A stretch of DNA of 64,000 nucleotides. It comes from Macrostomum lignano (Eukaryota). Where the stretch lies: positions 682,001 to 746,000 of the forward strand of contig NIVC01000027.1 of the NCBI GenBank assembly GCA_002269645.1. Direction: 5' to 3'. The position numbers and the translations under genes are program-made. Positions 11,769-35,361 of this stretch are shown piece by piece. How positions within the stretch are numbered: the stretch's first letter is position 1; every line of letters starts with the position of its first letter. Under the pieces are notes generated by a model. That model had not been told where the DNA came from. It did not search any database and saw only the letters and a list, made by a program, of their open reading frames with translations.

Positions 11769-13494
11769 ATGCTCATGCTGCAGATATTTCTGGCTGCTGT
11801 ATTGGCTGCTTCTGTGGATGCAAGAATCGTTGAATATTCCTACATTGGCTGCTACGTTGACAACCGGCCCAGAGACATGTCCGGGCTTGAAAATATCATC
11901 AGTATCAACGGAATCAATGTTGTCGACATCAACATCCAGAGTGCGAGCATGTCTCACGAGTTCTGTCGCGACATCTGCTCTCTTGGCGAGTTCCCCTACT
12001 TCGGCTTGCAATACGCCAGCTACTGTTTTTGTGGCGAGTCTTACGGAAGATACGGTCCTCGCAGTTCAACCGGATGCAATAAAGTTTGCTAGGGAAATGG
12101 GAAAAAAAATTGTGGCGGCGCCTTCCTGAACTCGGTGTTCGCTCTGACCTACGCCGGTGAGTGCTGCATTTTCTACCTACTGTCTTATAGAGTTGCTTGT
12201 AGCTTACACGGACGATTGTGTCGTATCAAATATCGTTGCGTCCTATAGTATCGAGAAGGTTGTCTCACGTGTAAACTTATAGTGAAGGTTGTTGCATATT
12301 TTATAGAGAGAGTATAAGAGACTGTGTTGTGTCTTTGTGAGATGTTTGTGTTTGATAAAGATCGTTGTGTCTTATAGTATTAGCAAGTTTGCTTCTAATA
12401 GAGGAGAATGCGTTTTATAGAGATGGATGTGTCTTAAATATAGAGATGGGTGTGACTTGCAGAGATGCAGGTGTCTTGTAGAGATGGATGTGTCTTGTAG
12501 AGACGGAGGTGTCTTATAGATATGGAGGTGTCTTGTAGAGATCGGTGTGTCTTGTAGAGATAGAGGTGTCTTGTAGAGATGGATGTGTCTTATAGAGATA
12601 GAGGTGTCTTGTAGAGATGGAGGTTTCTTGTAAAGATGGAGGTGTCTTATAGATATGGGTGTGTCTTATAGAGATGGAGGTGTCTTGTAGAAATGGATGT
12701 GTCTTGTAGAGATGGAGGTTTCTTGTAAAGATGGAGGTGTCTTATAGATATAGGTGTGTCTTATAGAGATGGAGGTGTCTTGTAGAAATGGATGTGTCTT
12801 GTAGAGATAGAGGTTTCTTGTAGAGATGGAGGTGTCTTGTAGAGATGGATGTGTCTTATAGAGATAGAGGTGTCTTGTAGAGATAGAGGTATCTTGTAGA
12901 GATAGAGGTGTCTTGTAGAAATTGAGATGTCTTATAGAGTTTTATTGTGCATTGTAGCGATTTTTTACACAGTTACAGAGATATTCCTTTAAATATTTTT
13001 ATGTTGCTTAGAAATAAGTGCTACAAAAGAAAAAAATCGAGTAGTCAACGTTTTTTAATTGAGCCTTCAAATCCCGTGTGGATTGGAAAAGTGACGTAAG
13101 ATCATGTGCAATCTGAAGAAGCAGTCTAAAAAATTCTGTCTTATCTATTTCAACATAAATTAGATTGACTCGAGCTGGGCAATCAACCCTTTCACGACTG
13201 CTCGCTCTCCTCTCTCCACCCAATATCTGTTGCATCACTGCTCCGCCAATGCTTTCAGCCGCCGGCTACTTCAAATTGTCGCCGAGGCCCAGCCAGTCAG
13301 TCGAGGCGTCGTTCACATTCTGGACCGTGACGGCTAATGGCAAATTCGAGTGCCTGGCCAAGTGCGCCGCCAAATCTACCGAATGTCAGGCGGTGATATT
13401 CAACGGGCAGCAGAAGCTGTGCTACCTGTTGAAGTACGCCAGCCCGCCTGCCAGCATGAGCAGCGTGGCTGGGGACTACTTTGTACGAAACTGA
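11769..13494 (+). pseudogene. Secreted WSC + PAN/Apple protein copy 1, join(11769..12156,13259..13494), in-frame TAG at 12090-12092
   Basis: Signal peptide MLMLQIFLAAVLAASVDA; WSC YIGCYVD..RD..MSHEFCRDIC..YFGLQYASYCFCG..C*GN...CGG..NSVF; phase-1 intron; exon 2 PAN core C-x3-C..C..F......CYL. The stop replaces the Ser seen in paralogues (CSGN). Confidence 0.85.
12400..12940. repeat. 18-19-bp minisatellite (GTGTCTTGTAGAGATGGA) in the intron of WSC-PAN copy 1
   Basis: Degenerate direct repeats, about 28 units. Confidence 0.9.
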
Positions 13495-13640
13495 GTGTCA
13501 TGAAGCTGTTTCACATAAGTTGAAAATTTAAAATTGAATGATAGAATATTTTACGTACATGCAGTTGACGTCGAAATTTCATACCGACAAAGTTCAATAT
13601 CGTCAGCGATGTGAAATTTTGTGAAGTTTGTGAATGTGAA

Positions 13641-14185
13641 GGATTGGATGCACAGAGTAGAGCCTGGGTCCAGAGACATTGGGATGCACAGAGTAGAGCC
13701 TGGGTCCAGAGACATTGGGATGCACAGAGTAAAGCCTGGGTCCAGAGGGATTGGGATGCACAGAGTAGAGCCTGGATCCAGAGACATTGGGATGCACAGA
13801 GTAGAGCCTGGATCCAGAGGCATTGGGATGCACAGAGTAGAGCCTGGATCCAGAGGGATTGGGATGCACAGAGTAAAGCCAGGGTCCAGAGACATTGGGA
13901 TGCACAGAGTAGAGCCTGGATCCAGAGACATTGGGATGCACAGAGTAGAGCCTGGATCCAGAGACATTGGGATGCACAGAGTAGAGCCTGGATCCAGAGG
14001 CATTGGGATGCACAGAGTAGAGCCTGGATCCAGAGGGATTGGGATGCACAGAGTAAAGCCAGGGTCCAGAGACATTGGGATGCACAGAGTAAAGCCAGGG
14101 TCCAGATACATTGGGATGCACAGAGTAAAGCCAGGGTCCAGAGGAATTGGGATGCACAGAGTAGGGCCTGGATCCAGAGGCGTTG
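13641..14185. repeat. 36-bp minisatellite (GGGATGCACAGAGTAGAGCCTGGATCCAGAGACATT), about 15 copies
   Basis: Direct repeats; explains the 12-aa periodic ORFs on both strands. Confidence 0.95.
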
Positions 14186-15909
14186 GCCTTCTTTTTATAA
14201 ATACAGTTATGAGTATGGTAGCTGAAGCTTGAATGTCTCCTACTATTACATCGGTATACGAATATGTGACCTACATGTGTGGTAGCGGGTCTGGCAGTCC
14301 CGAAAGAAGAACACAGGGAACCGAGCTTACCGGTCGTATACTTAAGGCTGATCGTTGTGGTCGAAGAAGTTTAGAGGACTGGTCCCGGTTTCTTGTTTTT
14401 ATTTCTCTCTATTTAACTGGGTTGCCTCTCTTGTAATAATTTTTCTTTAGAAGAGAAGCAAGCAATCAAGAAAATTGAGAGAAATCTGTCAGTTACCGCA
14501 GCTAATATTTTGGACTACTCCTATTCTGTATCTTGTGTTCGCTTCAGTCTCCATTTAACAACTATGTTTGTCAGGCACCGTGAATGAGCGGGCCAGAGGG
14601 ACCAAGGAAAGGCCTACTTCTGCTACTGAAGCAAGCGAGAGGACTCATTGGCCTTTGCCGGAGGGAGAGGGGGCTCAGTGATGACTCGGTTAGATAAATC
14701 AGTCCACCAGAAACTATGCTCATACCAGTGAATGAGGGACTTTCACTCGTAGCTTTATAACTCATGGCATTCATTGCATTGCCCAGTAACAGTCAGTCAG
14801 CCCTGTCAGAAATTTCACGAAAATATTAATGCAAAATCGATTATAACACGCATCACTTGTTTAAGAGCCTAAATGTGAGTTTTCGAGTTTAGAGTTCACT
14901 ATACAATTAATTTTTCGTTCTTTTGGATACCAACTGGCACTACTAAGTGGAATAAGTCGATTGCAATAAGTGCTTGAGGTTCAACTGGAGTGAGAATATT
15001 GATGGAGCAGTGCTCTTAGGACGTTTTTGATCGACAGAGGGCGTAGAAAGTTCCGGACTCGAACTATTCCAATTTCTAGATGTGAATCAGGAGCTGGAAC
15101 GAGCGCACGACCGCCCTAATGGCCTTCAAATAATACGAGAATTATAATTCGTCCATATCATCCAGTGTTAACATGAGCAAACTGTTTTTTCGAGCATACG
15201 TACTGTTTCTTATTGCCTTGAGTTTTTTAAACCAGAAGCGCCATCGCAGTGGCGCCAACGTGGAAGCACCATGACAATGACAACTGCAGGAGGGTTGCGG
15301 GCACCCTGGCAATCGTCCACGTCCCACAACCAGTGCTGACGGAAATTCTGTCCTTTCCACTGCTCCTGAGCACATACTGTGCAAGTGCACCAATACTGTA
15401 CGCAGGCACGCACTCATACAAGCCGTACACACACGCTCACACAGGGTGTACAGCGGCACTGACTTTCTGATCATCAAGCATGTACACTGTCTGTGCCTTG
15501 TCGGTCGGCCAGCTCATGGGTGTGAATGGAACGACAATCCCTTGGTGAATTATTCTTGCAACAAGCCCTAAATGAATGTGGCCCCGCACGGGTCGCGGAG
15601 CGAGAGAGTCAGGTGAGCTTGGCTGCTCTGCCCCGTTGGGGTTGCCAGGACTACTTTTGCCGGCCTATTGTGGGGGGGCAGCCCCCTTGCCGCCAATGGC
15701 TACGCCCACGCCCTCAAGAGTCACCTCAAGCCTTATCAATTATGAATATTTAAACGTGCTCACTCAGTATCCTGCATACTCAGCAATCTCATTGGATGAT
15801 ATTAATTTGGACCACAGCCTTCCTTCTATTTAAAAACGCAAAAGGTTTTTATTAAAAAAACTGTAGCCGCACACCTGCTTGTTAGCTTGGGCAGCAGAAG
15901 CTCAGCACA

Positions 15910-33923: not shown

Positions 33924-34898
33924 ACTAAAGCCCGTGCATTTTCTACCTGCGCAATGAATTTTCCGTTTTAAAGTTTCAGATGCATCTAGCTAACTGTAAT
34001 AATACAGAATATTCTTTTCTTGAATCCTGGTTATTGTACGAAACAATAATATTCTATTCCGCGTGCCTATTGATATGAATGTGTCATTTCAGAAAAAATA
34101 CCGATGCGCTTTTAAATGATGTCATGCCATGCACACTGAGAGAGTTCTCACCTAAAATGTTGCGATTTGGCGGTGATAATTAAATTAGCTCGCAGATATC
34201 ATCAGTGCATGTCAATGATATTTATTGTACAAGTAAAACAGTCAAAGCTGTAACTTAATAGAACATTGATTTACATATAGAGTAGCTTATGCTAATAAGC
34301 TGCGACATTGTTGTTTGCACTGTATAATTCGAAACATTTTCCAGCAAAGTTCTACTTGCGTTGCTTCTAGTTGATTGTTTGCGTCAGATCTGAAAAGCTG
34401 TCATTCACTCGAATACACGAATCCACGGTGCGCTGACAAATCGGAAAAAAACGTTGGCATGTTACCTGACTCTGAACAAGCAATCTTCCGGAAGTTACGA
34501 AAGTTAGTAAGTTAGTTAGTTAGTTAGTTAGTTAGTTAGTTAGTTAGTTAGTTTGTTAGTTTTGGACCCATACCTTTATGTTGTGAAAGCTTCATTTAAC
34601 GCATTCTCATGCCTATCTGCTCCTCATCAGACACCTGGGCGAGCTGCTTTATCCCAACCCTCACCGTGTTTTTTCCCATAGAGTTTTACCCACAGTTTGC
34701 TCCTCTTTGATCTCCGGTTTCGTAACTTCCGGAAGATAGCTTGTTCAGAGTCAGGTAACATGCCAACGTTTTTTTCCGATTTTTCAGCGCACCGTGGTTT
34801 AGAGTTGGACACGCAGTCGGCACTACTCAAAGCAGCAGTAGATGAAGGAAGTCAATAAAAAGTTTGATTCGCGCCCAAAAAGCCTTATACGGCTGGAG

Positions 34899-34906
34899 TA
34901 TATAAA
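34899..34906 (+). promoter_or_regulatory. TATA box of WSC-PAN copy 5
   Basis: TATATAAA about 55 bp before ATG 34958. Confidence 0.55.
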
Positions 34907-34957
34907 GGCAGTGACAAAAGATTTCGAAGCTCTTTACTAAGAGACGAAGAGACGAAG

Positions 34958-35361
34958 ATGTCTCCTCTTAGCAGTCGCCCAGCAGTCTTGGCAGCAGCCT
35001 GCTGCTCTCTCCTGCTCGTCATTGGCGTCACCGCTGCTCGAGTCATTCAGGTCTCCTACATTGGCTGCTTCAAGGACAACAGCGCCAGGGACATGAGAGG
35101 CTTATCGGGAATCAACAGCGTCGGCGAAATCTCCATTTCGGATCCAAGAGTGTTGAGCCGCAGCACGAGTCGGGAGTTCTGCAGCAGCTTCTGCGCAATT
35201 GGCGGCTTCCCGTACTTCGGGTTGCAGAACGCAAAGGCCTGTTTCTGCAGCTGGGACTTGCCAAAGAAAGCGACTGCAACATGATTTGCAACGGAAACTC
35301 AAGCCAGATGTGTGGAGGCCCTTGGCGAAATTCGGTGTTCGCTCTGACGTACCCGATCCGA
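34958..35361 (+). pseudogene. WSC-PAN copy 5, exon 1 only, with frameshifting deletion near 35250
   Basis: Signal peptide + YIGCFKD..RD...FC..FC..YFGLQNAKACFC; the YGRYG segment is missing and the frame shifts to ESDCNMICNGNSSQMCGGPWRNSVFALTYP; GTGAGT donor at 35362. No PAN exon found downstream. Confidence 0.8.

Follow-up and report, generated by a model that had tools for sequence, protein, structure and literature searches.

A tandem array of WSC and PAN genes in Macrostomum lignano: one intact gene for a predicted secreted two-module protein, and four disabled copies

A 64-kb window of Macrostomum lignano DNA (64,000 nucleotides; contig NIVC01000027.1, positions 682,001 to 746,000) carries a cluster of short genes in which a WSC exon is followed by a PAN/Apple exon, and which the original prediction described as five paralogues of a single design. 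How many of these copies can still encode a protein, how widely is the family distributed, and where might its product act? By searching the window with both exons of the intact copy (tblastn) and with profiles built from all copies (nhmmer), we found five WSC exons (exon 1) and four PAN exons (exon 2), all located between positions 11769 and 35361 (Table 1). Copies 1, 2, 3 and 5 are disabled and unable to encode the protein; copy 4 alone is intact. Our overall reading, to which we assign a probability of about 0.55, is that of a Macrostomum tandem array of secreted two-module binding adaptors, subject to copy turnover and acting in the male germline or testis. Taken separately, the family's structure and evolution as described below are held by us with high confidence.

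Copy 4 is the only copy with an open frame (31015-31908), and this frame includes every conserved cysteine. In copy 1, the in-frame stop is codon 108, at a site occupied by a serine in its relatives, whereas the stop of copy 2 falls where the signal peptide ends, in codon 19, which reads AGA in copy 1. In copy 3, exon 1 is 372 nucleotides (nt) long when phase 1 requires a length of 1 mod 3, and the WSC frame leaves the ATG frame at around 26953-26920. The WSC exon of copy 5 bears a 16-nt deletion at about 35250-35255, with loss of the FGSxGP segment of its M. lignano relatives, and no PAN exon was found for this copy anywhere in the window by tblastn or nhmmer. None of the indels in the array is located inside a long homopolymer. 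The array is thus largely real, but had been overstated: it consists of one intact gene and four recent pseudogenes rather than five working paralogues, and in being composed mostly of pseudogenes it is unlike the listed M. lignano relatives.

The two-exon design itself was found in copies 1 to 4. In these copies, the intron opens 4 nt past the Y codon of NSVFALTY, in the phase 1 that had been predicted, and pyrimidine-rich acceptors (TTTCAG in copies 1, 2 and 3, and TTCCAG in copy 4) restore the frame into the PAN exon. GTGAGT is the donor in all five copies; in copy 5, however, it is preceded by 5 extra nt, which results in phase 0, so that the single design claimed at first does not extend to this copy. 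The predicted products are 206 to 212 amino acids (aa) long, close to the 210 aa first announced, with 212 aa for the spliced product of copy 4. M. lignano gene models rest on transcript evidence, and those annotated for this family have the identical junction, which would support the splicing of exon 1 to exon 2. In the gene of the M. lignano protein P0010, a 394-nt exon 1 leads to a GTGAGT donor, and 69 nt of intron separate it from a 236-nt exon 2. The intron position and phase and the length of exon 2 agree with those of the window, and a second family copy is located 3.5 kb downstream. The introns of the annotated M. lignano family genes are shorter (69-93 nt) than those of the window (255-1102 nt).

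Copies 3, 4 and 5 each have a TATA box located 54 to 78 nt 5' of the ATG, a total of three, as noticed earlier. Upstream of copy 2 only TATTAAAA was present, and a TATA box was looked for upstream of copy 1 but none was found. An AATAAA motif is located at 32077-32082, 169 nt after the stop codon of copy 4.

Table 1. Exons and TATA boxes of the WSC and PAN gene copies in the 64-kb window
Feature	Positions	Strand	Remarks
Copy 1 exon 1, signal peptide and WSC	11769-12156	+	in-frame TAG at 12090-12092
Copy 1 exon 2, PAN, 236 nt	13259-13494	+	
Copy 2 exon 1, WSC	15910-16297	+	in-frame TGA at 15964-15966
Copy 2 exon 2, PAN, 236 nt	16584-16819	+	intron of 286 nt
Copy 3 exon 1, WSC, 372 nt	27075-26704	-	frame breaks
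Copy 3 exon 2, PAN, 245 nt	25889-25645	-	intron of 814 nt
Copy 4 exon 1, signal peptide and WSC with all eight cysteines	31015-31417	+	intact
Copy 4 exon 2, PAN with four core cysteines, 236 nt including TGA	31673-31908	+	intron of 255 nt
Copy 5 exon 1 only	34958-35361	+	damaged WSC exon
TATA box of copy 3, TATAAATA	27146-27153	-	
TATA box of copy 4, TATATAAAAA	30961-30970	+	54 nt 5' of the ATG
TATA box of copy 5, TATATAAAGG	34899-34908	+	

The ratio of non-synonymous to synonymous substitution rates (dN/dS) ranged from 0.1 to 0.5 across all pairs compared. For copies 1 and 2, it was 0.26 at a dS of 0.38 (0.30 for exon 1 and 0.13 for exon 2), which suggests that most of their divergence arose under constraint and, therefore, that the stops are recent. 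At the DNA level these two copies are 81.7% identical in exon 1 and 93.7% in exon 2, with alignments that end at the exon borders, and their introns (1102 nt, including a 19-bp minisatellite at 12441-12939, and 286 nt, respectively) failed to align. Such similarity, confined to the exons, is the pattern expected from selection on the two-exon unit. Among recent duplicate pairs, taken from the window and from the M. lignano set, dN/dS was 0.12-0.14 for exon 2 versus 0.30-0.43 for exon 1. A model with a conserved PAN anchor and a variable WSC head was considered on this basis, but it was backed in recent duplicate pairs only; across the family, the two domains were equally conserved (mean identity of 0.50 versus 0.48), and we regard the model as weak.

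The signal peptide, WSC and PAN/Apple assignments of the original prediction were recovered. Against WSC (PF01822; Pfam cut-off of 27.8 bits), copy 4 scored 65.3 bits, and the conceptual translations of copies 1 and 2 scored 50.6 and 53.8 bits, respectively. Copies 1, 2 and 3 scored 28.5, 25.2 and 27.6 bits against PAN_1 (PF00024), above the cut-off of 21.4 bits, and copy 4 came just under it with 20.4 bits. Several M. lignano family proteins have a precomputed PF00024 match, and some bear the name Apple domain-containing in UniProt. WSC and PAN_1 were the only Pfam domains detected in the family proteins, with no kringle, CUB, transmembrane or sulfotransferase domain. The only hydrophobic stretch of copy 4 is N-terminal (residues 5-22), with a conserved cleavage-like site (...G/RV). 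Neither a transmembrane segment nor a glycosylphosphatidylinositol signal was found in copy 4, whose C-terminus is hydrophilic, in agreement with the absence of both in the initial description.

Eight WSC cysteines and four exon-2 cysteines were invariant in 16 out of 16 members. The former are C33, C71, C75, C91, C93, C108, C112 and C120, the last followed by an equally invariant G121; the same cysteine pattern and C-G-G motif are found in the WSC domains of Wsc1 and Kremen1 (PMC9024836). In exon 2, C167-x3-C171 is located on a predicted helix (164-173), and C177 and C189 lie beside or in predicted strands (179-183 and 188-192). Neither a third PAN disulfide nor the Apple-type disulfide between N- and C-terminus was found in exon 2 of the 16 members, where the additional cysteines are clade-specific (C138 in the copy 4 clade and a C-terminal cysteine in copy 3). 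Since only four cysteines are invariant, exon 2 is, judging by its sequence, a minimal two-disulfide PAN that resembles the HGF N domain rather than a strict Apple domain.

The AlphaFold2 model of the M. lignano protein P0002, which is 76% identical to copy 4, had a mean predicted local distance difference test (pLDDT) score of 74, with about 88-93 in the PAN half. This half was laid out as beta-beta-beta-alpha-beta-beta-beta, with the C-x3-C on the helix. When the two-domain model was compared with the PDB using Foldseek, the best match was the Kremen1 WSC, and yeast Wsc1, the plasminogen PAN, the HGF N domain, factor XI, MIC4 and the SML-2 lectin were also matched. A profile of the four exon-2 peptides gave only weak matches with PDB sequences, to MIC4 and HGF. 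WSC has been described as having the PAN/Apple fold itself, with two helix-to-sheet core disulfides in common (PMC9024836). On the strength of this shared fold, the most fitting description of the protein would be a tandem of two PAN-superfold modules, one of the WSC type and the other a minimal PAN with two disulfides.

With copy 4 as a query, 23 proteins were matched, all 23 of them from M. lignano, which is a free-living flatworm. A profile of 16 members recovered about 55 M. lignano clusters (90% identity) of 190-230 aa and of the same design, and matches outside Macrostomum were limited to the WSC half. In addition, 1.84 billion representatives were scanned with HMMER without filters, from which the best 150 matches were taken in. 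All the full-length matches in a single stretch, among the best 150, belonged to M. lignano, as did the full-length matches in a search of 5.8 billion clusters; the remaining matches listed came from octopus, amphioxus, fungi, protists and metagenomes and were multi-WSC proteins. Proteins of other taxa that aligned beyond the WSC part were considered as possible relatives and rejected, as they corresponded to multi-WSC proteins (octopus, amphioxus, fungi and metagenomes). Outside Macrostomum, WSC and PAN_4 occurred together in only one protein among the matches listed, a metagenomic sequence of 676 aa. As far as the databases show, the family thus appears to be confined to Macrostomum, and weak two-domain relatives may exist elsewhere.

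The closest M. lignano proteins were P0005 for copy 4 (90% identity over 147 aa) and P0009 for copy 5 (82%), and no M. lignano protein exceeded about 52% identity with copies 1, 2 or 3. Four M. lignano proteins, P0010 (BOX15_Mlig016881g1), P0008 (BOX15_Mlig011376g1), P0001 (A0A1I8HX25) and P0005 (A0A1I8G3G0), are uncharacterised and share the design described above. They are composed of 205-219 aa, with a signal peptide, an eight-cysteine WSC, the NSVFALTYP junction, a four-cysteine PAN and a C-terminus of the form ...PPASL..DG.FxRG; they are 38% to 90% identical to copy 4 and have the intron site, phase and tandem placing in common with it. The family is therefore already present in the public M. 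lignano gene sets, unnamed and unstudied, and it is built of known kinds of domains rather than being a new kind of system. Its M. lignano members bear automatic names ("WSC domain-containing protein" or "Apple domain-containing protein"). No characterisation of the family was found in the searchable literature, as the original prediction had supposed, and a full-text search for the family Mlig gene ids returned no match; none of these ids was present in the supplements of Grudniewska 2018.

Where the product might act was approached through the orthogroups of Brand et al. (2020), in which Mlig011376.g1, Mlig003596.g1 and Mlig012529.g1 are all assigned to OG0000005. This orthogroup includes 92 sequences, 37 of which are M. 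lignano genes, together with transcripts of M. hystrix and M. spirale; M. pusillum is not represented. The positional classes recorded for it are Non-Specific, Other and Testes, Testis being the final label, and its label in the neoblast dataset is germline_FACS. No member of OG0000005 has the Tail class, and none of the mapped prostate gene ids was found in it. No expression evidence other than this orthogroup-level label was found, and the label speaks for the male germline. We put action of the family in the testis at slightly short of an even chance.

Taken together, these data suggest the following mechanism. Exon 1 would provide a cleavable signal peptide and an eight-cysteine WSC, and exon 2 a minimal PAN/Apple domain with two core disulfides only. 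The mature protein, of about 190 residues, would then comprise two disulfide-locked binding modules of the PAN type, with no catalytic, membrane or repeat part, and the intact protein could serve as a secreted, soluble, non-enzymatic binding adaptor, either lectin-like or protein-binding. Glycan binding in particular is only a tentative proposal, which we consider rather doubtful. The array would gain and lose copies over time; in the window, one copy (copy 4) is intact and four bear recent lesions. The site of action would most probably be the male germline, the testis or sperm, rather than the prostate, mucus or immunity. One may go further and imagine a sperm-associated recognition system found only in Macrostomum, in which the adaptors, carried on sperm or accompanying them, bind to glycans or proteins in the female antrum of the partner, and in which copy number and the WSC head turn over fast under sexual selection. 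Such a rapid turnover would account for the large M. lignano array and for the freshly disabled copies of the window; even so, we consider this extension improbable.

The two modules were compared with known systems. Serendipita indica WSC3 and yeast Wsc1 have in common with the flatworm proteins a WSC fold with four disulfides and a CGG motif, and WSC3 is a soluble beta-glucan lectin. However, the fungal proteins are multi-WSC or membrane-anchored and lack PAN_1, and glycan binding by the flatworm WSC is only putative. The vertebrate proteins Kremen1/2 and WSCD1/2 also share the WSC domain, Kremen1 being the best Foldseek match, but the flatworm proteins lack their kringle, CUB, transmembrane and sulfotransferase parts. 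For the second module, Sarcocystis SML-2, the apple domains of Toxoplasma MIC4, the HGF N domain and the plasminogen PAN, all of them among the Foldseek or profile matches, exhibit a PAN fold with a helix-to-sheet disulfide core that the flatworm module would share, and SML-2 is a small secreted galactose lectin with tandem PAN domains. The flatworm PAN is only 15-23% identical to these domains, has two disulfides only, and has a WSC-type module as its partner instead of a second canonical PAN.

Several observations weigh against our reading. Copy 4, the only intact copy, scored 20.4 bits against PAN_1, which is 1 bit under the cut-off of 21.4 bits, and a model of exon 2 alone, obtained with AlphaFold2 from the four window sequences, had a pLDDT of only 48.6. 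The Foldseek matches with the plasminogen PAN, the HGF N domain and SML-2 (probability of 0.9-0.99 over about 80-85 columns) were not assignable to the WSC or the PAN half, because both halves share one fold. Ligand binding is deduced from the domain families, and the Testis/germline label holds at the level of OG0000005 and not for each gene. Finally, the lesions could in principle be allele-specific, or the single-base stops could be assembly errors; such an explanation is unlikely for two independent stops, and not credible for the 16-nt deletion or the missing PAN exon.

Other explanations of the family were weighed against a role in the male germline. The family could consist of seminal-fluid proteins produced by the prostate gland and passed to the mating partner, similar to the prostate-limited transcripts of M. 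lignano, which are rich in WSC. Judging by best BLAST matches (Weber 2018, Table S1), WSC proteins account for about 25 of the 76 seminal-fluid candidates limited to the prostate, Mlig-pro46 and other WSC candidates influence sperm competition, and the family proteins are likewise small and secreted. The WSC candidates (Mlig-pro4, 5, 11, 23, 28, 38, 46, 49 and 63, among others) also resemble the family in genus, secretion, WSC domain, expanded clusters and reproductive role. Nevertheless, they are other genes belonging to other orthogroups, apparently multi-WSC without a PAN exon, and their expression is in the prostate (tail), in contrast to the Testis label of OG0000005. None of 12 family gene ids (Mlig011376, 016881, 003596, 012529, 015848, 025595, 023418, 005479, 021789, 027391, 003631 and 013640) appeared in the published gene mapping of 18 seminal-fluid candidates (18 of the 76 are mapped and 58 unmapped), OG0000005 includes neither mapped prostate gene ids nor a Tail class, and the mapped prostate WSC transcripts seem to encode two WSC domains (alignments of 200-290 aa to multi-WSC proteins). 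Two prostate transcripts that matched "Plasminogen [Crassostrea gigas] EKC22375" were considered as a sign of a WSC and PAN combination, but the same oyster protein was also matched by the two-WSC transcript RNA815_80.4 and is uninformative on PAN. The prostate lead, with no gene in common with the 18 mapped candidates and an orthogroup labelled Testis and not Tail, was therefore demoted to a rival explanation, which we judge unlikely.

The soluble bivalent glycan bridge put forward by the original prediction, acting in mucus, in innate immune recognition or in another somatic gland secretion, and a variant that we add to it, in which the protein would bind dietary diatom beta-1,3-glucan, draw on the binding of beta-glucan by WSC domains of a fungal lectin and of galactose by PAN domains of an apicomplexan lectin (the Foldseek match SML-2), and part of OG0000005 is indeed tagged Non-Specific or Other. 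Yet no expression or binding evidence for such a role was found, the sole region-specific tag in OG0000005 is Testes, accompanied by germline enrichment, and the loss of four copies out of five speaks against this cluster being essential for housekeeping or defence; we give little credence to this proposal, as the orthogroup-level label points instead to testis and germline. It is also conceivable that the whole cluster, copy 4 included, is an unexpressed relic, and that the array is active in related species only. The four disabled copies, the missing TATA box of copy 1, the missing second exon of copy 5 and a locus full of minisatellites and with a hAT transposon would fit such a remnant. 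However, the frame of copy 4 is still open, and this copy retains its TATA box, consensus splice sites, AATAAA and the full set of 12 conserved cysteines and is 90% identical to P0005; moreover, the low dN/dS indicates that constraint lasted until recently. A non-functional remnant thus appears unlikely.

Several other features were observed around the array. A pair of tetraspanin-like paralogues is located at 20670-22646 (+), between copies 2 and 3, and at 40029-43037 (+), 3' of copy 5. The two share 43% identity in the N-terminal exons (E 2e-24) and 48% in the CCG-motif loop exons (E 9e-25); the Pfam Tetraspanin match reached 18 bits only, for an exon fragment. There are hints that a block with a tetraspanin gene as well as WSC and PAN genes underwent an older segmental duplication. 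An uninterrupted open reading frame (ORF) of 702 aa at 47635-49740 (+), with a BED zinc finger (39 bits) and a hAT C-terminal dimerisation domain (44 bits), appeared to encode an intact hAT-family transposase. At 9286-10194 (+), a 303-aa open frame that lacks a stop codon and includes MSSSASAVDD... is Ala/Glu-rich and coiled-coil-like, without a significant Pfam match, and may belong as an exon to an unrelated gene nearby.

Repeats were abundant in the window. A 94-bp satellite (16.6 copies, 100% matches) occupies positions 1-1561 and runs past the left edge, and a dispersed repeat is present at 37739-38098, 52372-52731 and 21057-21304, two copies of which are inverted and 95.6% identical, the third being about 83% identical. 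Micro- and minisatellites were unusually dense (11137-11357, 13646-14186, 22725-23582, 24128-24568, 28592-28990, 33384-33923 and 54521-56002), with repeat units that include (AGT)74 just 5' of copy 1, units of 36, 11, 15, 45 and 20 bp, and (GTTA)135; they yield long spurious ORFs on both strands. Some repeats are shared with L001, an M. lignano locus that carries two family genes: a 21-bp minisatellite at 56926-57952 and 9155-9289 is 70-89% similar to a repeat at 12455-12687 of L001, and a 228-bp non-coding stretch beside copy 3 (24872-25095), with a weaker copy at 51966-52042, is 86.8% identical to positions 2435-2656 of L001. This stretch is probably a dispersed repeat or a transposon fragment. 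Synteny with L001 was considered and rejected, the matches being family exons and repeats only.

For now, the family described here is an uncharacterised paralogous family of known domains, and it offers a clean case of an animal using WSC joined to a minimal PAN as a soluble protein. If the testis link is true, it would rank among the larger lineage-specific secreted male-germline families in a hermaphrodite model of sexual selection, sperm competition and gene turnover, and the field would gain a compact candidate of about 190 residues, with two lectin-type modules, suited to recombinant expression.

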